A stretch of 64,000 bases of DNA from Hemiscyllium ocellatum (Eukaryota): NCBI RefSeq assembly GCF_020745735.1, contig NC_083409.1, positions 16,354,789 through 16,418,788 of the forward strand, written 5' to 3'. Under the pieces are notes generated by a model. It was given only the letters and a program-made list of their open reading frames with translations. It ran no database searches and had not been told where the DNA came from. Every line of letters starts with the position of its first letter. Position 1 is the first letter of the stretch. This document shows positions 6,390-63,257 of the stretch, in pieces. Made by a program: the position numbers and the translations under genes.

Positions 6390-6395
6390 TTTATT
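6390..6395 (-). terminator. Poly(A) signal AATAAA of the light-chain transcript
   Basis: First AATAAA I found on the minus strand, ~525 nt after the C stop, followed by a GT/T-rich tract (TCTGTCTCTGTGTGTGCTTTGG). Confidence 0.65.
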
Positions 6396-6920: not shown

Positions 6921-7249
6921 CTACACACATTCTGATCTCTTGATGCTCTTGCTGAGGGGAGAGGGGAGGGTCACGTGGGTGAGGGCACAGGAGAAGCGAG
7001 CGTCAGACTCCCAGTCAGACCCAGAGAGGGTCAGCAGGCTGCTGACACTGTAGGTGCTGTCCGAAGCTCGCAGGTAGTTGCTGGTCTGAACCCCATCCGA
7101 AATGATTGCACCGTCCTTCTTCCACTGCACCTCCAGCTCATCGGGATAGAAGTGATTGGCAAGGCACACCAGGGTGGCAGTGCCCTTGGCATTGACCTGC
7201 TCCGGGGAGGGAGGTAGCAGGGTCAGCTTGGGCTGAGAGTTGTCACGGC
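6921..7249 (-). CDS. IGKC: Ig kappa-class light-chain constant exon
   Basis: Acceptor TTGTCTTTCAG at 7250. Intact ORF (S)RDNSQPKLTLLPPSPEQVNAKGTATLVCLANHFYPDELEVQWKKDG...YSVSSLLTLSGSDWESDARFSCALTH...RSECV-stop has C1-set motifs and the penultimate Cys. Confidence 0.96.
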
Positions 7250-8589
7250 CTGAAAGACAAGAGAAACTATTTTAATCCCTGTAATTCAAAGGGATTTCAA
7301 CTCTGTAGGTTCACTGGCAAAACAATCCATTTGAACATTTGTATCCAATACCTAACAAGCCCCATAAAAGGACAGGGACTTTTAAAATTGCTTCTTGTTA
7401 TGTGAGTGTCACTGGAAGGGCCAGCATTTATTATCCATCCCTAATCGCCGCTGAGAAAGTGATAGTGAAAGAGAAGGGACAGTTTTGGACCATCATTTTT
7501 GGAATGTATGTGAGCAGCTGAAAGGGCTATCAATGGGGGAGCATTTCAGTGACAGTGATCAGAACTCAGTGAGATTGAGAGTAGGGATGGAAATGGAGAA
7601 CCACGGAACAAGTGTAAAAGTTTTTATTTGGGAACAAACCATTTTACTAAACAGGTCAGGGATTGGGTAAAAGTAAGCTGAAAGACAAAATGCAGGGATG
7701 AAATTTACTAGGACCTGAGGAAAGCAAAGAGCTGACAGGATGAATTGTGTCCAGATGAAGTCAGTGAAATCCCAGTGATGTTTTATAATCACAGAAAGAA
7801 CAAGAGAATGAAGGAATGTGAGGCCCATTCGAGAGCAGGAAAGGAACTTGTGTGCGGGGGTGGGAGATGGAGCAATGGTTCCTCATGAAAACATTCGGTC
7901 TGTTTTCACAAAAGAGAGGGACAAAGCAGGAACTGTAGTTCAGGAGGAGGACTGTGCAACATTGGAATGGCATCTTTCACATCTGAAAGACTCCCAGTTC
8001 ATCCAAAGAAAAGAAAGATCCATGCTGTCCCCAAGACATTTGCAGACAGTGTGGGACTTGTTTGAAATGTGGTCACTGTTGTAATATAGGAAATGTGCAA
8101 GCCAGATTGTACACAGCAAGATCCCACAAGCAACAATGAACCAAGGAACATTTTGAGTGACGTTTGTTCAGGAATAAATATCAGCCTGAATACAATTCAA
8201 AGAGAAAGTAACTGGAACAGTTGGATGGAAAATGAGAAAAATGAAAGTTAAAGGAGAAGGGAGAATTGTTGGTTAGTGATGGGATTCATTGTTACCAGGA
8301 AATAAAAGGAAAGGGACAGAGCGTTGTGAATGTCATATTGTACTGAGGAAACTTAAAAGTGCAGGGAAGGTCACTATAGAACAAGCTTAAAGGCTTTGTC
8401 TCTTAATGCATGACCCATTCGGAATATGGTCGACAAAGTGGTACCACACAAACCAAGGTAAATCAAGCTTCAAGGAATTTAAACTAATTCAAGAAGGTAG
8501 GGCCTCAGGACACTTTATTAAATCATTCGGATCAAGTACTAGGATAGAGAGTATAGAAAGGATGAGGAATTGAACTTGAGGCCCCGCAG

Positions 8590-8840
8590 GGTGGAATGGT
8601 GGATCAGTGGTTAGCACTGCTGTCTCACAGCTCCGGAGACACAGACTCAATTCCGACTGACTGTCTGTGTGGGGTTTACACATTCTCCCTGTGTCTATGT
8701 GGGTTTCCTCCCATTGTCACAAAGATGTGTAGGTTAGGAGGATTATCCATGGGAATTATAGGGTGGGTGGGATGCTTTTAGGAGGGTCAGTCTGGGCTGA
8801 ATGGCCTGCCTCCACAATGTAGGGATTCTATGAATTCTAA
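8590..8840 (+). mobile_element. Diverged HE1-type SINE
   Basis: Same head and body as the 5831 copy, with deletions. Confidence 0.75.
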
Positions 8841-8989
8841 AGGAGATAACTATGAGAAGGAGACAGTCAATGCACCACTGCAGGTGTTGTACTTCGATGC
8901 ATCGAGTATATGAAACAAGGTAAATGAGCCTGTAGCGCAGGGATGTGGCTGCAAGGAGATCAGGGCTGGGAACTAAATATCCAAGGATA

Positions 8990-11900
8990 CACATCCTATT
9001 GAAAGGAAATGCAAGGGGATAGAGGGTCAAGTGTGAAGGAGGAACTGAAGGTAATCCTTGTTAGTCAGGAAATGGTCTTGGAGAAGCTGATGCTAGGGCC
9101 TGATGTTCTGCATCCCAGAGTCCTTAAGAAAGTGGGTCTAGAAATAGTGGACACATTGGTGATCATTTTCCAGCATTCTGTCGACACTGACAGAGTTCCA
9201 ATGGACTAGACAGTATCCAATATAACCCCACTTTTTAATAAAAGGAACGAGAGTGAAAATGAGGAATTACACATGAGGAAAACGCTGGAGTCAGTTATTA
9301 AAGATACAATAACCGAGCATTTGGAAAGCAATGACAGGATCGGTCCAAATAAGCATGGATTTACAAAAGGGAAATTAGGGCTGACACATCTCCTGGAAGT
9401 TTTTGAGGATGTGATCAGTAGAGAGTAGACAAGGCTGAATCAGTGGATAACAACAAAAATGATGAAAAAGTTCAGCAGGTCTGGCAGCATCTGTGGAGAG
9501 CAATCGAAGTTAGTGTTTCGAATTGAGTGACCCTACTTCAGAACTCAGTGGACAGTGAGTATCTGGGCTTTCAAAAGGCTTTTGACAAGGTCCCATACAA
9601 GAGATTAGTGAGTTACATTAAGCCCCATGGTATTGGATGTAATGTATTATCATGGAGAGAGAACTCATTGCCAGATAGAAAGCAGAGAGTTGGAATAAAT
9701 GAGTCCTTTTCAGAGTGGCAGGCAGTGATGAGTGGGGTACCACAGGGTTCAGTGCTGGGACCCCAGCTGTTCACAATACACATAAATGATATGGACAAAG
9801 GAATTGAATGCAATCCCTACAAACTTGCAGATGACATGAAGCTGGGTGGCAATGTATGTTGTGAGGAGGATGCTAAGAGGCTGCAGGGTGACTTGGACAG
9901 GCTGGCTGAGTGGACATATACTTGGCAAGTGCAACATAATGTGGGTAAATGTGGGATGATCCACTTTTGTGGTAAACAGATTATGAATGAATGGTGGACG
10001 TTTAGGAAAAGGTGAGGTGCAGTGAGAGCTGGGTGTCATTGAAAGGGGGCATGCAGGTGCAGCAGGCAGTGAGGAAAGCTAATGGCATGTTGGCCTTCAC
10101 AGTGTATTGGAGTAAGGATGTCTTGTAGAATTAAACAAGGCCTTGGTGAGGCCTCACCTTGAGTATTGTGTGCAGTTTTGGTCTCCTAGTCTGAGGAAGG
10201 ACATTCTTGCTATTGAGGGAATCCAGCGAAGGTTCACCAGACTGATTCCCGGGATGGCAGGACTGACATATGAGGAAAGACTGGATCGACTGGGCTTGTA
10301 CTCACTGGGATTTAGAAGACTGAGAGGAATCTCACGGAAACATATAAAATCCTGATGAGATTTGACAGGGTCGATGCTGGAAGAATGTTCCCAACATTAG
10401 GAAAGTTCAGAACCAGGGGTCACTGTCTACGATTAAGGGTTAAGTTATTCAGATGATGTGAACCTGTGGAATTCTCTACCACAGAAAGCTGGTGGGGCCA
10501 GTTTGTTAGATATATATCAAGAGGGACGTGGTCCTTGAGGATGAAGGGATTTATGGGTATAGGGGGAAGGTGGGAATGGGAAACTGAGATTACATAATCA
10601 GCCATGATCATATTGAACGGTGGTGCAGGCTCGAAGGGCTGAATAGCCTGTTCCTGCAGCTATTTTCTATATTTCTATGTTTCTAATGATAGGTAGATGT
10701 GTGAGGGGTGTGGAGGTGGGGTGTGGGAGGAGAAAGTTTATCCTGTCAGGAAGAACTGAAATTTATCGATAGCAAGAGGAAATATTGAGTGGGAATGCAT
10801 AGAATCTGTGTGAGTCAACTTAAGAAACCACAAAGGAACAAAGCCCCTGATGGGAGTTATGTACCAGACTCCGCGCAGTCGTCAGGATGTGGGTCAGAAA
10901 ATAAATCAGGAGATAGAAAAGGCATGTAAGAAAGGGATTATTACATAGTCATGGGGACTGCAATATGCAGGTGGACTGGGAAAGTCAGGTTGGGAATGGA
11001 TCTCAAGGAAAGGAATTCATAGAATGTCTGCGAGAGGCTTTTTTTGGAGCAGTTTATGGTAGAGCCACAAGGAAACAGGTAATTCTGGATTTGTTAATGT
11101 GTAATGAGGTAGCTCTGATTGGGGAGCTGAAGGTGAGTGAACCCTGAGGGGGTAGTGACAATGATATGATAGAATTCACCCTGCAGTTTGAGAGGGAGAA
11201 GCTGGAATACTATGTAATAAGAGGAGTTAATGAGCAAGTTAGACAAAGGAGAGCCAATGGACATGATCTATTTGGATTTCCAGAAGGCCTTTGACAAGTT
11301 GCCACACAGGAGGCTGCTAAATAACATAAGAGCCCATGGGGTTTGGGGTCCTCTACTGACATGGGTAGAGAGTGAGAATAAATGGATCTTTTGCAGGATG
11401 GCAGCTGGTGCCTCCTGCAGTTCAGCAGGGGGCAGTGTTGGGACCTCAGCTATTCATGTAACAATTAATTATATATTAACGATCAGGGAAAAGGAACTGA
11501 GGGCATTGTTCTTAAATTTGCTGATAACACAAAGATGAAGTGAGGGACAGGGAGCGTTGAGGAGTAGGGAGGCTGCAGAAGGACTTGGAAAGGCTCAGAG
11601 AGTGGGCAAAGGAGTGGTAGATGGAATAGAAAATGGGAATGTGTGAGGTTATGCAGCTTGGTTGGAAGAATAGAGGCTCAAACTGTTTCCTAAATGGGGA
11701 AATTTGGAATCCTGAAACGCAAAGTGGCTCAGGAGGCCTCTTTCAGGTTTCTCTTAAGGTTAATATGTAGGTTCAGTTGGCAATTAGGAAGACAAATGCA
11801 ATGTTAGCATTCATTTCAACTGAGTTAGAATACAAGAGCAGGTGTGTCCTGCTGAGGCTGTATGAGACTCTGGCCAGGCTGCATTTGGATTATTGTGAAC

Positions 11901-12420
11901 AGTTTTGGGACCCATATCTAAGGAGGGATGTGCTTGTATTAGAGGAGATCCAGAGGAGGTTTATAAGAATGACCCTGGGGGTGACAGCCTGGTCTGATGA
12001 GGAGCGGTTGAGAACTCTGGATGTGTACTTGATGGAGTTCAGAAGGACATGGGAGGATCACATATACACTTACACAACACTGAGAGGCCTGGATAGGGAC
12101 GTGGAGAAGATGTTTCCACCAGTAAGTGAAACAAGGACCAGAGGGTACAGCCACAGAATTTAGGGATAACTCATTAGGACTGAGATGCGAAGGAATTTCT
12201 TCTGCCAGAGGGTGGTTAATCTGTGGAACTCATTGCAGTGGAGATGAAGTCATTGAGTGTATTTAGGACAGACATTGATAGATTCCTGATTGGAAAGGCG
12301 AACAAGCATAATGGGAAGAAGGCAGGAGAATAGTCTTGAGAAACACATGACCAAACAGCACAGCAGACTTGATGGGGCGAATGGCCTAATTCTGATATCT
12401 TTTGAAGAGACTCTGCAAAA
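8990..12420 (+). mobile_element. Decayed CR1 LINE fragments (RT and 3' UTR), at least two elements
   Basis: RT motifs such as DFQKAFDKVP, GVPQGSVLGPQLF and LVRPHLEYCVQFWSP; CR1 3' UTRs near 10600-10685 and 12350-12400. Confidence 0.88.
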
Positions 12421-14110
12421 CCCCAGAAAACTGAAAGCTCTGGATTGTGAGCCCTGCTGGAGCTGTTTGTCATTAGAACTTTGCCAAGAGATAACCAAAG
12501 AGTGGAGACAGTATGCATCTTGTTCCTTGTGGGAACTTCAGAATGCTTCCGAGCTGCTCCTGGAATACAATGTGAGCAGGAAGTGTGGTCAGTGACAGCA
12601 GTTGGAGCTCTGGGCTTCGGAGCTTGAGCAGCAGCTGGTGTCAGTGTGGAGCGTCCGTGAGGCTGAGAGCTCCGTGGAGAGCACGTTTCTAGATGTGGTC
12701 ACTCTGCAGCTTCAGAGTACGCAGGGAGAGAGGGAATGGGGAAGCAGCAGACAGTCCAAAAGGACCAGGCAGCTAGTACAGGAATACCCTGAGTGCATCC
12801 CGCTCTCCAACAAAAATTCAGTTCAGAATCCCGATGAGAATGATGGTTCATCTGGGGAATGCAGCCAATGCACCAAGATGGGGGGAAGCTGTACAGGGGG
12901 GCACAAGGAACTGGAAGAGCGATAGTGAGAGGAGATTCGAGAGTGAGGGCAATCGATAAGATTTTCTGCAGCTGCAGATGGGAATCCAGGATGGTGTGTT
13001 GTCTCCCTGGTGCCAGGGTCAAGGATGTCACTGAGTGGCTGCAGAGCACCCTGAGGGGAGAGGGGGAACAGGCAGCAGTCATGGTCCACATCGGTCCCAG
13101 TGACAGAGGGAGAAAAAGGATGTGCTCCTGCAGTCAGAATTTAGGGAGCTTGGGAGGCAATTCGCAACAGGAACTCAAAAATAGGAATCTTTGGATTACT
13201 CCCATGACCAATGCAAGTGAGGATAGGAACAGGAAGATAAGACAGGTGGATGTGGGCTGGAAATGTGGTCCAGGAGGGAGGGCTTTAGATTCTTGGGTCT
13301 TTGGGAATGACCTGGTGGGAGATGCAACCTCTATAGACTGGATGGGTTGCTCCTGAACATAGCAGGAATTGAGCTCCTCGTGGGGTGATTTGCTGGTGCT
13401 GTTGGAGAGGGTTTAAATTAATATTGAAGGGCCGTGGGAACCAGGAGGGTAATATCAGGAAGGAACACCAAGGAACACAGAACCCTGGAAAAAATTGTTC
13501 GCATCAGAGTAAGGAGTAGTAACTTCCTAGGCAGGGTCAGAGTGAGAGAGAGCCAGCAATAAATTCTAAATCTGGCTGGCTGTGCATGTATGGGACTGCA
13601 CAGAGTGTGGGGAATAAGACTGGGGAATTACAGACACAGATTACCAAGTGGAAATCTGATGTTGTTGCTCTAACAGATGAGGTTCAAATGAAGACAGGAC
13701 TGGGTGTTAAATATTCCTGGATACAAAGTGTTCAGGAAAGATAGGAAAGGGGGGAAAGGGTGAGAGGTGTGGGATTGATTAAGGAGATCGGTGCAGAGCT
13801 GGAGAAAGAAGGTGTCTCAAAGGGGTCAAGGACAGAATCGATTTGGTTCAAGATAAGGAACAAAAAGTTGCAATCAGGTTGTTCAGTGCAGTCTGTAGGT
13901 CACTGACTAGTGGGAAGGATGTAGGGGAGCAAACCTGCAAGGAATTTACAGAGAGGTGCAAACATTACAGGATTTTAATTGTCAGAATATCAACTGAGAC
14001 AGCAACTAGATCTTGGGAATGAGGAAATCCAAGTAGATCAAGTGTCAGTGAGAGGACATTTAGGGAAGAGTGATCATTGTATCATAAAGTTTAGGGGAAC
14101 AATGGAAAAG
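12420..14110 (+). mobile_element. CR1 5' portion: ORF1 with esterase (GDS) domain and start of the ORF2 endonuclease
   Basis: RAIVRGDSRVR...RMVCCLPGARVKDV...VMVHIG matches the CR1 ORF1 esterase; frameshifted. Confidence 0.8.
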
Positions 14111-14259
14111 GACAACGGACAATCCAGCATAAAGTCATGATCATGGATCGTATCCCATGGATCACCCCCAATGTTTCACTCTTAGAATTTTTCACATTTT
14201 ATTTTAAAACAGAGTATGAATGAGTTACAAATATAATATTTTGCTTCAGTATTTACAGT

Positions 14260-16290
14260 TGAGAAGGACATGGAAGTGAAGGAAATTTGGGAAATAAATG
14301 TTGATGTCTTGAGAAGAGCCCATATTACAGAAGAAGACGTGCGGTAATCTGCTCTTTAAACTCATAAAGATAGATAAATTCCCAGGACCTGATCAGCTCC
14401 ATCCCAATACTTTGTGGGAAGCTTGGGAAGAGACAGTGATGCCCCTTGTGGAGATGTTTGTATCATCAACAGCCACGGGTGATGTGCTGGAAGACGGGGG
14501 TGTGTCTAATGTTGAGCTGTTATTTAATGAGATCTGCAAGGAATACACAGGGAATTATAGACCAGTGAGTCTGATCGTGGTAAATTGTTGGAGGGGAATT
14601 TGATAGACAGGATCTAAATGCATTTGGAAAGACAAGGATTGATTAGGGATAGTCCACATGGCTTTGTCAGTGGGAAAATGTGTCTTACAAATTTTTTTGA
14701 GGACATGACCAATAAGATAGCTGAGGGCAGAGTGGTAGACATTGTCTACATGGACTTTAGCAAGGCCTTTGATAATTTCCTGCATGGACATCTGGTTAGT
14801 AAGGTTAGATCAAATGTGATCCAGGAAGAGCAAGTTAATTAATACAAAATTGGCTTGATGGTTGGAGACAGAGTGTGGTGGTAGAGGGTTGCTGTTCAGA
14901 CTGGAAGCCTGTGACAAGCGAAAGGATTGCTTCCGGGTTCATCATTGTTCGTCATTTATAGAAACAAATTGAATGAGAATATAGGAAGTATAGTTTGTGA
15001 GTTTGAAGATGACACCAAAATTGGCGGTTTCATGGTCAGTGAAGAAGGCTATTTGAGAGTACATTTACATTATGCATTGAGATAATAGCAAGGTGTTGCA
15101 TTTTGGTACAGGCCAGGGCTAACACAGTTAATTGTGGGGCCATGGGGAGTGTTGTCAAACAGGGAGACCAAGGGGTGGACGCACATAGAGGATTGAAACT
15201 GGTGTCACGTGTAGACAGGGTGGTGAAGAAAGCATTTGGTACACTTGCCTTCATCGGGTATGGGAGTTGGGACATTACAGCTTCCCAAGATGTTGGTCTG
15301 GCCATGTTTCCAATCCACCTGCTATTGGAAGGATAGCATTCAACTGGAAAGAGTGTAAAAAGGATGACAAGGATGTCACCGAGACTGGAGGGTTTGAGTT
15401 ATAAGGAGAGACTGGTTAAGCAGGGCTACTTTCTTTGGAAGCTCAGAAGCTTCAGGGTGACATTTTAGAGATTTATAAAATCATAATGGGCATAGATAAG
15501 GTGACTAGCTAAGGTCTTTTCCTCACGGTAGGTTAGTACAAACCTAGCGGGCAGCGGTTTAAAGTGAAAGAGGAAAGATTCAAAAGGGACCTGAGGTATC
15601 CCTCTTTCTGGCAGACAGTGGTATTGAATGAACTGCCAGAGAAAGTCGGAGAGGCGAGTATGATTAAAACATTTAAAAAACATTTGAACAGGTACATTGG
15701 AAGAGAAAAGGGATAGGAAATGAGCCAAATGCAGGCAAATGGGACTATGGGGAATAGAAAAGGTATATATTTCACAAAGGATATGAATATTTTGCAGATG
15801 GCATGACAGAAAATTCCCATGGAAGGCTCAGGGATGAGGAACGTCAGTTATGAAAATATATTGGAGAAGTTCAGACTGTCTTCCTTGGAGAAGAGAAGGC
15901 TGAGAGGAGATTTGTTTGAGGAATTCAACATCAGGAGGGGTCTGGACAGAGTAAACAGGGAGAAAATGTTCCCTCTCATTAAAGGATTGAGAGCGAGAGC
16001 CACAGATTGAAAGTAATTGATAGAAGAAGCAGAAGTGAGAGAAGGAAAAACATTTTCATGAAGCAAGTGGTTAAGGTGTGGAATGCACTGCCTGAGAGTG
16101 TGGTGGAGGCAGCTTCAATTGAAACATTCTGAAGGGAATGAGACTGTTATTTGAAAAGGAACAATGTGCAGGGTGACAGGGAGAAGGCAGGAGAATGACA
16201 CTCAGTCAATTGCTCATTCAGAGAGCCAGTACAGATGGGATGGGCAGAATGGTCTCCTTTTGCACTGTAACAGTTTTGTGATTGTGTGAT
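14260..16290 (+). mobile_element. CR1 RT to 3' end fragments (two elements)
   Basis: GNYRPVSL, HGFVSGKMCLTN, VYMDFSKAFD, plus 3' UTRs. Confidence 0.85.
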
Positions 16291-16338
16291 TGAGTAGAGT
16301 TAAAGCTGGTGGAGGTGGGAGCTCGGTGTCTCACTGTG

Positions 16339-16362
16339 CTGCTGCTGCTGCTGCTGCTGCTG
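16339..16362. repeat. (CTG)8 microsatellite in the J-C intron
   Basis: Eight perfect CTG units. Confidence 0.95.
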
Positions 16363-16707
16363 AGGTCAGTGAGATCAGAGACTGGGACAGGGAGCCAGAG
16401 CTCACATCAAACTCTGCCCCGTGTCCGTCACACTGAGACTGGCAGGAGGCTACTCACTGATTTCACTCCATGCTGCAGGAATGGGACCACAGGCTGCAAA
16501 TGGACAGAGCTCCTCCACACAGTGAGTAAACTTCCTGACTTCTGTCTTGCTTAAAGGGGGCAATGGAACTAAAGAAATACAGCTGGACACCCTGTTAAAC
16601 ACAGTGCTCCTCAATCAACCATTTCATTCACTGCAGCTTCCCACTAACACCTTCAACAATTCAGCATTTGTGTTTTAGCAAGTTTGATATTGAAAGGGTT
16701 TACTTAC

Positions 16708-16739
16708 TCAGTCGGAGTTTGGTTCCTTTACCGAACGTA
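16708..16739 (-). CDS. IGKJ: J segment ([10 protein letters not shown]) fused directly to V, one base out of frame
   Basis: T ACG TTC GGT AAA GGA ACC AAA CTC CGA CTG A|GTAAGT gives the FGxG motif and a canonical phase-1 donor at 16707. No heptamer or nonamer lies between V and J. Confidence 0.95.
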
Positions 16740-17038
16740 AGGGAAGCTCTCACTTTGCTGACAGTAATAATCAGCGACATCCTCATTCTGAACGTTGCTG
16801 ATTGTCAGGGTGAAATGTGTGCTGGACACTTCTGTCCCGGTGAATCTGTTTGAGACTCCTGTGAATAGTGATGCAGCATTGTAGATCAGGAGAGAGGGTT
16901 TCTGTCCTTCCCGCTGCTGGAACCATTCAACATCACCACTGGCACTCTGACTGGATTTACAGGTGATGGTTGCGGTCTGGCCCAGTTCCACTGACAGCAC
17001 CGGGGGAGACTGAGTCATGATGATGTCCCCACTGATAC
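16740..17038 (-). CDS. IGKV: Ig kappa-like V segment (leader part 2 + FR1 to CDR3)
   Basis: Acceptor CTGACCCCTCAG at 17039. Translation [96 protein letters not shown] retains both Cys, the Trp and the DxAxYYC motif. Confidence 0.96.
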
Positions 17039-17224
17039 CTGAGGGGTCAGAGAGGAACACAGTGAAGTCAGAACTGTCACAGAAAGAGCCAGTCAAATGA
17101 GAGATTGTTGGAGACACTGAGCATTCCTCTGGTTTCAGCATTTTCCCTTCAATCACAAGTCAGTGGAATTGGAGTGAAATGGAGAGCAGCTAAAGATTCA
17201 AGGTGGAAGGAGAGAGATTTGTAC

Positions 17225-17273
17225 CTGCGACACAGAATGCCAGGGGCCAGATCAGCTGGGTGTGTGAAATCAT
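17225..17273 (-). CDS. IGKV: Ig light-chain leader exon (MISHTQLIWPLAFCVA/G)
   Basis: ATG at 17273-17271, hydrophobic signal peptide, phase-1 donor G|GTACAA at 17224. It splices in frame to the V exon, giving ...[13 protein letters not shown]. Confidence 0.93.
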
Positions 17274-17333: not shown

Positions 17334-17431
17334 TTTATAAAGCTGCAGCCTGTGTGAGTCTGACTGGGTGTTCCTCAGTATGTAAATAGCATCAGGCAGA
17401 GAGAGCCACGTCAGCCCCCCACACTTCCTGT
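17334..17431 (-). promoter_or_regulatory. V-gene promoter: TATA, octamer variant, CRE-like and ETS motifs
   Basis: TTTATAAA at 17334-17341, ATTTACAT (7/8 octamer) at 17380-17387, TGACGTGG at 17406-17413 and ACAGGAAGT at 17423-17431. Order and spacing match Ig light-chain promoters. Confidence 0.7.
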
Positions 17432-18021: not shown

Positions 18022-18844
18022 CCAAACCCAAACCTAAACCCTAATCCTAACCCGAACACTAACCCTAACACTAACCATAACCCAGAACCCAACCCTAACC
18101 TGAACCTGAACCCGAACCCTAACCCGTACCCTAACCCAAACCCTAACCCTAACCCTAACCCTAACCCAAACCCTAACCCTAATTCCAAACCCTAACCCTA
18201 ACCCATACCCTAACCCAAACCCAAACCCTAATCCTAACCCGAACACAAACCCTAACCCTAACCCTAACACAAAACCCAACCCTAACCCGAACCTGAACCT
18301 GAAACCTTACCCANNNNNNNNNNNNNNNNNNNNNNNNNNNNNNNNNNNNNNNNNNNNNNNNNNNNNNNNNNNNNNNNNNNNNNNNNNNNNNNNNNNNNNN
18401 NNNNNNNNNNNNNNNNNNNNNNNNNNNNNNNNNNNNNNNNNNNNNNNNNNNNNNNNNNNNNNNNNNNNNNNNNCGAACCTGAACCCGAACCCTAATCCAT
18501 ACCCTAACCTAAACCGTAACCCTAACCCTAACCCTAACCCAAACCCAAACCCCAACCCCAACCCCAACCATAACCCAAACTCTAACCCAAAACCTAACTC
18601 AAACCCGAACCCTAACACAAACCCAAACCCGAACCCAAACCCTAACCTGAACCCAAACCCAAACGCTAACCCTAACCCCAACCCTAAACCTAACCTATAC
18701 CGCAACCCAAACCCAAACCCAAACCCCAACCCCAACCCCAACCCCAACCCCTACCCCAACTCTAACCCAAACTCTAACCCAAAACCTAACCCGAACCCTA
18801 ACCAAACCCAAACCCTAACCCGTAACCTAACCCGTACCCTAACC
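18022..18844. repeat. Degenerate interstitial telomere-like array (CCCTAA with CCCGAA/CCCAAA/CCTGAA variants)
   Basis: Continuous hexamer array on both sides of the N gap. Confidence 0.92.
18314..18473. other. Assembly gap (160 N)
   Basis: Run of Ns inside the array. True array length and left-right linkage depend on scaffolding. Confidence 1.
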
Positions 18845-24195: not shown

Positions 24196-24677
24196 CTCTG
24201 CTTCTCTACAAGAGGCAACTAGAGATCGAGCTGAAAAGGAAAGATTTACTGGGTTATGGGAGAGGGAGGGGCAGTGGGATTAATTGGATCACTCACAGAC
24301 ATGATGGGCTGAATGGTCTCCTCGTGTGCTAGGGGGAGCAGATTTAGGACTGAATTGAGAAGGAACTTCTTCACCCAGAGGGTGGTGAATCTATGGAATT
24401 CCCTCCCCAGCGAAGTGGTTGAGGTTTCCTCAGTAAATGTTTTTAAAGCTAAGACAGGTAATTTTTTGAACAGAAAATGAATCAAGGGTTTTGGTGAAAA
24501 GGTGGGTAGGGGGAGCTGAGGCCATGAAAAGATCAGTCATGATCTTACAGAATGGCAGAGCAGCCCCAGGGGCCAGAGAGCTTGCTCCTGCTCCTGGTTT
24601 TAATGTTCTTATGTGCTGTCAGATTCCAGGGAGTGCAGACCGTTCACAGTTTTCCCCCATCACAATAACAAACATCC

Positions 24678-24872
24678 AGCTGCTCCGAGCTCCTTCTTTC
24701 ACTTCCTCTCTCGGTGAAGTTTCAACCTTATGCTCTGACAGCCTTTGCAGTTATTTTTTATACTGGGGCTTTCTGCTGTGGTCAGAATCTCTAATAATAA
24801 GTGTCCAATCAGTGACAATCACAGCAGCTAAGAGCAGTCAGGACTGAGGAGCCAGGCTCACTGGGAAACACA
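24678..24872 (-). promoter_or_regulatory. Conserved promoter-like block, copy 1 (CCAAT and TATA both intact)
   Basis: CCAATCAG at 24805, RUNX TGTGGT at 24777-24782, TATAAAAAA at 24762-24754 (minus) and GGAAGTGAAA at 24706-24697 (minus). About 96% identical to copies 2 and 3. Confidence 0.55.
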
Positions 24873-25093
24873 TTGGGAAGATCAAAGCCATCCTCTTCAG
24901 GTCCCGGTACAACCTCCATCCCTCTCCCTGAGCACTGTCTGCTGCTCAACCAGACTCTTCACAAAAACAGAATACCTCAGCAGGTCTGGCGGCATCTGGG
25001 GAAAGAAATCAACGTTAACATGTCGGGTGGTGTGACCTTTGCTCAGAACAGTTCTGAAGAAGGTTCACTTGTCCCAAAATGTTAACTGGATTA

Positions 25094-41709: not shown

Positions 41710-41904
41710 AGCTGCTCCGAGCTCCTTCTTTCATTTCCTCTCTTGGTGAAGTTACAACCTTCCGATCTGACAGCCTTTGCAGTTATTTTTTATACTGGGG
41801 CTTTCTGCTGTGGTCAGAATCTCTAATAATAAATGTCCGATCAGTGACAATCACAGCAGCTAAGAGCAGTCAGGACTGAGGAGCCAGGCTCACTGGGAAA
41901 CACA
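41710..41904 (-). promoter_or_regulatory. Conserved promoter-like block, copy 2 (CCAAT mutated to CCGAT)
   Basis: 8 differences from copy 1 in ~194 bp by manual alignment. Confidence 0.5.
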
Positions 41905-42320
41905 TTGGAAAGGTCACAGCCATCTTCTTCAGCTCCCAGTACAAACTCCATCCCTCTCCCTGAGCCCTGTCTGCTGCTCAACCAGACTCTTTTCAACCTG
42001 GGCCTCATCTTTGGGGCTGTTCTGAGTCCCACATCTTCCACATCACAAAGATCAGCCACTGAAAATCTCAGCCATCCTGTTGTGAATCCAAACATGGGCA
42101 TTCGAATATTGTGCTTGCACACATCACAGACACTGCACTCACTCTTCCCAAAGTATGCTGCCAATGTCCAGACTTGCACCAACTTCTATTTCCCCAATCC
42201 CCTGCACACCATGTCTACATTGGCTCCTGGAACAGCAACACTTCGGTCATCAAATTCTCATGCTTGTTCTCAAATCCATCCCTGTCCTTCACTCTCCCTA
42301 TCTCTGTAACCTCCTCCAAG
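41905..42320 (+). mobile_element. L2 LINE 3' fragment; paralogues at 24873-24960 plus 26290-26630 (+) and 61975-62430 (-); other L2 pieces at 21890-22030 and 39805-40040
   Basis: IGKxxAIxF...SIPLP...LNQT L2 RT C-terminal motif and the L2 tail. Confidence 0.72.
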
Positions 42321-61473: not shown

Positions 61474-62426
61474 CATTAACTAACGAGGTTACACATTGTT
61501 CGGAGTTCCCTAATGTGGGATATAAGGGAATGCTGATGGCTATTTTCCATAGGGAATTTCAGAAGACATTTAAGAACATTTCACAAACGAAACATGGAAT
61601 CAGATCTTGCACTCCACAATCACTTGATGAAGGAGCACCGCTCAGAAAGCTGGTGTTTCCAAATAAACCTGTTGGACTACAATCTGGTATTCTGTGATTT
61701 TTAACTTTGTACACGACAGTCCAACACCGGCACCTCCAAATCATGGAATCGGTTGGAATTTGAGAAATGCATTTACCTTGGGTCAGAAATGGGTCTGTCT
61801 AGGAGACAGAGAGGAAGGGTAATGTGCGTGTGTTCCAGTGAGCCAGATGTGAGTAGTGGTGTTGCCAGGGGTCTGTGCTGGGACCTAAGCTTTTCACGAT
61901 ATTTCTCAATGACTTGGATGTAGAAACAGAGAGCCATATATCCAAGATTGTTGACCACACTGATGTGGCTTGGAGGAGGTCACAGAGATAGGGAGGATGG
62001 AAGGACAGGGAGCGAATTGAGAACAAGGATGAGAAGTTGAAAATCAAGGTGTTGTTGGACCAGGAGCTTATGTCAGTCAGTGAGGATTGTGGTGGTTATG
62101 GTGCGATGGAAGACAGGGGCGGGGGTGTGAGGTGGACTTGGTGTGAGTTTGAACAACGATAGCAGAGTTTGGGATGAGCTGATATTTAAAGAAGGCAGTG
62201 GCTGTGACATGGGCGTGGATAACATTGGAATGGTCACATTTGGCGTACCAAAAAAATGACTGAGATTTTCAGTGGCTGATCTTTATGATGTGGAGGACTT
62301 GGGCCTCAAATCAACCTCAAAGATGAGGCCAAAGTTATAAAGAGTCTGGTTGAGCAGCAGACAGTGCTCAGGGAGAGGGATGGAGTTTGTACCGGGAGCT
62401 GAAGAGGATGACTTTGATCTTCCCTA

Positions 62427-62621
62427 TGTGTTTCCCAGTGAGCCTGGCTCCTCAGTCCTGACTGCTCTTAGCTGCTGTGATTGTCACTGATTGGACACTT
62501 ATTATTAGAGATTCTGACCACAGCAGAAAGCCCCAGTGTAAAAAATAACTGCAAAGACTGTCAGATCGCAAGGTTGAAACTTCACCAAAAGAGGAAGTGA
62601 AAGAAGGAGCTCGGAGCAGCT
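62427..62621 (+). promoter_or_regulatory. Conserved promoter-like block, copy 3, inverted (TATA mutated to TGTA)
   Basis: 7 differences from copy 1; ATTGG at 62490, TGTAAAAAA at 62537, GGAAGTGAAA at 62593. Confidence 0.5.
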
Positions 62622-63257
62622 GGGTATTTGTTACTGAGACGGGAGAAAACTGTGAACCAACTCCACTCCCTGGAATCTGACAACACAGGAGGCGGCCATT
62701 CAATCCATCATGCCTTTTAATTACCCAATTAGCCCCATTGCTCTCTCCCCATAACTCAGCAATTCTTTCCTATTGCGCTCAATCTCCAATTCCCTCTTAT
62801 AGACCTCATGACCACAGAGTGATACTGCTCTGAAGCTGGGCTTCAAATTGGCATCTCATTCATTCATTGGGAGACAAACTGCCTGGGCTGGGAAATGGAG
62901 CTCAGGATCCTGAACATTCCCTCTCCCCTCCTGAGGAACACTTCATTTGGTTTTGCATATTCACTTGTGGGAAGTGGCTTCACCGGCTGGGCCAACATTT
63001 TTTACCCTGTCCCTAGTTGCCCTGGAGAAGGCGGTGGGAAGCTGCCTTCTGGAATTGTTAGCGTCCACAAGCTGTAAATTGACTCACAATGCTCTTGGGG
63101 AGGGAATGCCAGCATTTTGACCCAGCAACAGTGAAGGAACAGTGATACATTTCCAAGTCAGGATGCTAAGCTTTTTTTGAAGGGAACTTGCAGCTCACAG
63201 TGTTCCCGTGTATCTGCTGCTCTTGTTCTCAATGGAAGTGAACGTGGGTTTGGAAGG

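Follow-up and report, generated by a model that had tools for sequence, protein, structure and literature searches.

A shark kappa light-chain gene in which V runs straight into J was found on the minus strand of a 64-kb stretch of Hemiscyllium ocellatum DNA (the window; positions are counted from its first letter). The gene was intact apart from the joint, at which a single extra base put J out of the V frame, and the DNA missing between V and J corresponded to the RSS-bounded spacer of split homologues in the bamboo shark Chiloscyllium punctatum. With J out of register and a TAA closing the V frame, this unit cannot yield a light chain. The V and J were probably joined by deletional recombination of the RAG type, in the germ line or else in cells of the very early embryo, giving a joint that is now inherited.

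Anatomy of the fused VJ gene

The features of the unit were as follows.

17380 to 17387, minus strand: octamer-like promoter element ATTTACAT, read from the sequence and invariant with three split kappa genes of C. punctatum
17334 to 17339, minus strand: TATA box TATAAA, invariant in the four-way alignment (window and three C. punctatum genes)
17225 to 17273, minus strand: leader exon, with ATG at 17273-17271, MISHTQLIWPLAFCVA and then a split Gly codon
17039 to 17224, minus strand: leader intron, 186 nt, GT..AG
16739 to 17038, minus strand: V part of the fused VJ exon, frame open throughout (Pfam V-set, 5.7e-18)
16738 to 16742, minus strand: coding joint CCT T/A with the extra base T at 16739, placed from the V ends and J starts of split homologues
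16708 to 16738, minus strand: J segment, ten codons including the FGXG motif and one further nt, shifted by one base against the V frame
16728 to 16730, minus strand: TAA closing the V frame early, 20 nt short of the end of the VJ exon
7250 to 16707, minus strand: J-C intron, about 9.46 kb, with reverse-transcriptase (retroelement) fragments seen in the list of open reading frames
6921 to 7249, minus strand: kappa constant exon, intact, with TAG stop at 6923-6921 (Pfam C1-set, 1.6e-22)
6390 to 6395, minus strand: candidate poly(A) signal by position, the first AATAAA, 528 nt past the stop

The first-pass annotation had described V as continuing directly into J without an RSS, with a lone T at 16739 shifting J, and this was confirmed in the text of the minus strand. 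Its description of promoter, leader, V, J, C and splice sites as intact was borne out by the Pfam hits, by the four-way alignment and by an open C exon of matching phase; the junction was, as it had also held, the sole defect, no other frame-breaking lesion being present in leader, V, J or C. On the minus strand the junction reads TTC CCT / T / ACG TTC GGT AAA GGA ACC AAA CTC CGA CTG A, followed by the donor GTAAGT, which starts at 16707. Past the joint the V frame reads ...FPYVR and then meets the TAA at 16730-16728, the J motif lying in the next frame.

The peptide encoded by the leader exon matched the corresponding part of the shark kappa proteins P0005-P0009 and P0039, and the V exon, beginning at 17038, possessed the conserved Cys, Trp and YYC. 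The J segment was near-identical to those of three split C. punctatum loci (L001-L003). The promoter is typical for the family, because both ATTTACAT and TATAAA were invariant in the three unrearranged bamboo-shark homologues; the leader splice sites were likewise invariant across the window and these three genes. The C exon possessed a tttcag acceptor, phase 1 matching that of J, both domain cysteines, a terminal SECV and the TAG stop.

Over its first 2.9 kb the J-C intron aligned colinearly to L001 and L002 of C. punctatum, with an identity of about 92%. Gene spans of 7.3 and 9.2 kb are recorded for two H. ocellatum kappa models, and thus a J-C intron of 9.46 kb is of normal length for the group. 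Fragments of reverse-transcriptase reading frames were observed at 9527-12160 on the plus strand, antisense within this intron, with many more across the window; the retroelement content of the intron was partly common to the bamboo-shark units.

A message, if transcribed, would encode a 119-residue precursor consisting of the leader and a V domain missing its last strand. A rescue by splicing from a cryptic donor, TTCG/GTAAAG, was rejected because joining it to the C exon led to a stop two codons in. Under the mammalian 50-55 nt rule, a stop close to the last exon junction may escape nonsense-mediated decay; by analogy, a transcript with its TAA 20 nt before the last exon junction may do so, yielding a V-only fragment.

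Family assignment

The C exon shared 92% identity with that of nurse shark NS4 (P0039) and 96% with an H. ocellatum protein annotated as immunoglobulin kappa light chain-like, while V shared 90% identity with C. punctatum P0005 and 75% with NS4. The kappa-type arrangement of signals, a 12-bp spacer on the V side and a 23-bp spacer on the J side, was seen in the closest split homologues (L001-L004). Within the 64-kb window there were one V, one real J and one C1-set exon, all on one strand, which make up a single V-J-C unit; a J-like match at 56551-56535 possessed neither heptamer nor splice donor and was dismissed as chance. The locus is thus one V-J-C unit of the shark kappa (NS4/type III) light-chain cluster. 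It is not a processed (retro-copied) immunoglobulin pseudogene, because the 186-nt leader intron and the 9.46-kb J-C intron are both retained.

Comparison with split units of Chiloscyllium punctatum

A 1.1-kb query extending from the promoter to 0.3 kb past J was compared with three C. punctatum contigs carrying split genes of the same V subfamily. It aligned to each of them as two blocks of about 91-93% identity, the first ending at 16739 and the second starting at 16738, and the bamboo-shark DNA between the two blocks, 675, 693 and 614 bp in the three contigs, was lost from the window. In the split genes the V side reads ...CCTTGG (or CCTTGA) / CACAGTG-12 nt-ACAAAAACC, and the J side GATTTTTGT-23 nt-CACTGTG / GGACACGTTC at two loci or GCTTACGTTC at one. 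The J sequence following CACTGTG in split homologues thus starts with GGACACG or with GCTTACG; the latter form occurs in L003 and also fits an H. ocellatum model.

Judged by these homologues, the window was without RSS12, the spacer and RSS23, together with 2 nt at the end of V and 4 nt at the start of J. As the direct split ancestor in the same genome lies outside the window, its coding ends were taken from paralogues or orthologues of about 92-94% identity, probably belonging to another species. No added bases, neither N nor P, were needed to account for the junction from the V and J ends of the relatives. The CTT at 16741-16739 can be assigned either to the V end or to the J start, so that an ancestral J of the GCTTACG type would imply a microhomology of as many as 3 nt. 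The first-pass annotation had called the junction a kappa (NS4) VJ coding joint and had proposed that V and J ends be aligned with unrearranged ones. The alignment to the split C. punctatum units agreed with that reading: excision ran from RSS to RSS, V was shortened by 2 nt and J by 4 nt, and N or P bases were not needed. Chance can be dismissed as the source of this pattern, because the lost DNA coincides, give or take a few bases at either end, with the RSS-bounded spacer of the split homologues.

The window and the split unit L002 remained colinear for 13.5 kb (window 27351 to 13864; identity about 91%), and the spacer was the only large loss. The sole other size difference was a longer (AACCCT)n array in the window, at 18025-18844. 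A fuzzy scan of the whole window gave no credible RSS12 or RSS23, and no re-inserted copy of the spacer was present anywhere in it. Two CACTGTG motifs, at about 16600 and 16530, were considered as RSS remnants and rejected, as they belong to conserved intron sequence that is present in the split bamboo-shark units too. P0007, suspected of being a joined relative, turned out to be a split V with RSS12.

Codon 98 of V (16743-16744) is TGG in all three bamboo-shark genes and TTC in the window, a change of Trp to Phe brought about by a tandem two-base change 4-5 nt from the joint. This difference is probably an ordinary germ-line variant of CDR3, since SFP also occurs in a catshark kappa model (P0045).

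Flanking sequence

The (AACCCT)n array in the window was telomere-like, degenerate and at least 0.8 kb long (18025-18844), lying about 750 bp upstream of the kappa ATG; at the equivalent position of C. punctatum L002 (7241-7292) only about nine units were present. An assembly gap (N, 18314-18473) was located inside the array, about 1 kb upstream of the ATG. In addition, a module of about 350 bp occurred three times in the window, at about 24600-25090, 41710-41992 and 62335-62687, and was 93-95% identical to L002:1264-1615, above the 91% of the surrounding sequence. The module is found upstream of the kappa unit; within the window, the copies near 42 kb and 62 kb were not followed downstream by a V gene.

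Selection and age of the defect

A change was counted as private where the window differs while all three bamboo-shark genes agree. The V exon carried 14 such changes, the frameworks holding 5 synonymous and 2 non-synonymous ones and CDR2 and CDR3 the other 7. For 2 or fewer non-synonymous changes among 7, the binomial probability under a neutral 1:3 ratio was about 0.013. The neutral branch, measured in the J-C intron, amounted to 4.9% substitutions and 5 indels over 2657 sites; about 700 coding bases drifting along the whole branch would be expected to acquire some 2-3 further stops or frameshifts, whereas none was observed. The mostly synonymous framework changes and the lack of further stops or frameshifts indicate that the gene was constrained for most of the window lineage, and therefore the defect is young relative to the lineage of the unit, in line with the first-pass annotation; this age is a relative one, not convertible to years, and gene conversion between units could blur its signal.

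Origin of the joint

Both ends of the deletion lie a few bases from the heptamer/coding borders of an interval of 0.6-0.7 kb, and this is the signature of RAG. In the proposed course of events, RAG-type cleavage would have excised RSS12, the spacer of about 0.6-0.7 kb and RSS23; nibbling would have taken about 2 nt off the V end and about 4 nt off the J start, or would have been divided differently within CTT if J began GCTTACG; and the ends would have been united by non-homologous joining with neither N nor P bases, as expected with TdT absent. The joint would have landed in the wrong frame, and its transcript would end at the TAA after ...FPYVR. We infer three things, namely RAG as the agent, an origin in the germ line and a frame that was wrong from the start. 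Two-thirds of unselected V-J joints are out of frame, and the out-of-frame product therefore needs no special cause. An exact look-up of the 137-residue V-frame reading frame in the searchable public assemblies gave no match, and hence no independent sighting of the joint.

The joint might instead have been formed in frame in the germ line, the gene serving for a time before a small indel at the joint, either loss of CT from CCT CTT ACG or gain of a T, shifted the frame. Such an ancestor would give a canonical nine-residue CDR3, QQSESFPLT, like that of the cDNA-type P0001, and the J start that it calls for, GCTTACG, is known in the relatives L003 and P0048. Moreover, CTCT is a slippage-prone context in which a 2-bp loss would leave the same final text, and a gene that once worked, in joined or in split form, would account for the purifying selection seen in the frameworks. 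However, protein searches gave no in-frame joined relative of the V subfamily of the window, and by our own arithmetic a disabling hit at random has a chance of about 5 in 700 of falling on bases that cannot be told apart from the junction. Because a random lesion seldom falls exactly at the joint, a later 2-bp loss is rated unlikely.

If the gene were truly joined in frame and a single base at the junction had gone wrong in assembly or consensus, the error would have had to hit, by chance, the sole place where biology predicts a frame defect. The assembly gap in the repeat array, about 1 kb upstream, is a point in favour of such an error, but the local context consists of just CCC and TT, with no long homopolymer, and the roughly 700 nt that make up leader, V, J and C held no second frame-breaking indel. 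This explanation is considered very improbable.

We also give little credence to the capture by the assembler of a somatic VJ joint from a B-cell clone, the germ-line unit being split. Lymphocytes do yield non-productive joints free of N bases as well; yet rearranged cells are a small, polyclonal fraction for each cluster, with dozens of clusters, and the split form should therefore prevail in the consensus. The joint lies in more than 18 kb of uninterrupted contig, which is part of a multi-megabase piece. Furthermore, fused kappa genes are known from erythrocyte DNA, and one is present in the assembly of another species.

A RAG-independent deletion of the spacer, by replication slippage or end-joining at the CTT microhomology, is scarcely believable. 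The joint does allow a microhomology of up to 3 nt, but a random deletion is very unlikely to place both its ends, as here, no more than 2-5 nt from the heptamer/coding borders of an interval of 614-693 bp.

Relation to known joined genes

For a joint formed by RAG-type recombination in the germ line there are close precedents. Six germline-joined NS4 genes, two of them pseudogenes, were cloned from nurse shark erythrocyte DNA (PMC2193156); these are R4, R7, R18, RE18 and the pseudogenes R6 and R19 (Lee, Fitch, Flajnik and Hsu, J Exp Med 2000; PMC2193156). Unlike lymphocyte cDNAs, the joined genes showed 'little evidence of TdT activity', and they were attributed to RAG activity in germ cells (PMC2193156). 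According to a later review, a few nurse shark kappa genes are joined (PMC5192425). The novelty of the present unit had thus been overstated in the first-pass annotation, as two germline-joined NS4 pseudogenes, including R19, were already described in 2000 (PMC2193156).

The window unit resembles the joined NS4 genes in isotype, in clean loss of the RSS, in nibbling of the ends with little or no N addition, and in its leader intron, which is 186 nt in nurse shark NS4 also (PMC2193156). R19 comes closest, its reading frame being kept only if one CDR3 nucleotide is omitted (PMC2193156), the same kind of one-nucleotide problem as in the window. R19 and R6, however, carry further stops or disruptions, whereas the lesion of the window unit is the junction alone. 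The genes also come from a different shark species, and their germ-line status was shown with erythrocyte DNA of several animals, whereas that of the window unit is deduced from its sequence.

Non-productive somatic joints of V-kappa and J-kappa in B lymphocytes share with the window the excision between a 12-RSS and a 23-RSS, the trimming of ends and an out-of-frame stop near the end of the VJ exon. They differ in being private to single cells, in not being inherited and, in sharks, in often having N regions, while the window joint is without N and lies in an assembled chromosome. In C. punctatum L005 (P0049), on a 1.65-Mb contig of an independent assembly, V is fused to J with no heptamer and is followed by a GTAAGT donor as in the window; unlike the window unit, this gene keeps its frame, and its V comes from a more divergent family. 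The H. ocellatum RefSeq model P0047 contains ...WP LRSVKEP..., which corresponds to J in the wrong frame, its junction being deduced from the protein model. P0047 is annotated 'kappa light chain-like', with the wrong-frame J patched to C by odd splicing, and it looks like another out-of-frame germline joint. Pre-joined V and J are likewise found in V-J-C clusters of lambda (type II) in cartilaginous fish and of sigma-2 (type I) in skates (PMC5192425); there the joining affects entire isotypes, whose genes are in frame and expressed, whereas the window holds a single broken unit in a mostly split kappa family.

Implications

Taken alone, the locus repeats the point made in 2000; what it adds is a unit of a different species and one that bears no second lesion. 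Because selection for a working antibody cannot have kept such a joint, a clean out-of-frame one shows germ-line joining unfiltered. It is possible, although we hold this only tentatively, that the unit is one of many pristine out-of-frame germ-line V-J (and V-D-J) joints in the genome, in which case germ-line joining of the RAG type would be frequent and recent, with split and joined alleles possibly segregating. If so, the set would form an unselected record of RAG and end-joining activity in germ cells, about two-thirds of it out of frame and without TdT additions. In a genome-wide census of germline joints, in frame and out of frame, the locus would count as one data point, and the joint can serve as an easy PCR marker for the polymorphism of such joints. 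These findings support the view that RAG acts outside lymphocytes and reshapes the immunoglobulin loci of sharks.
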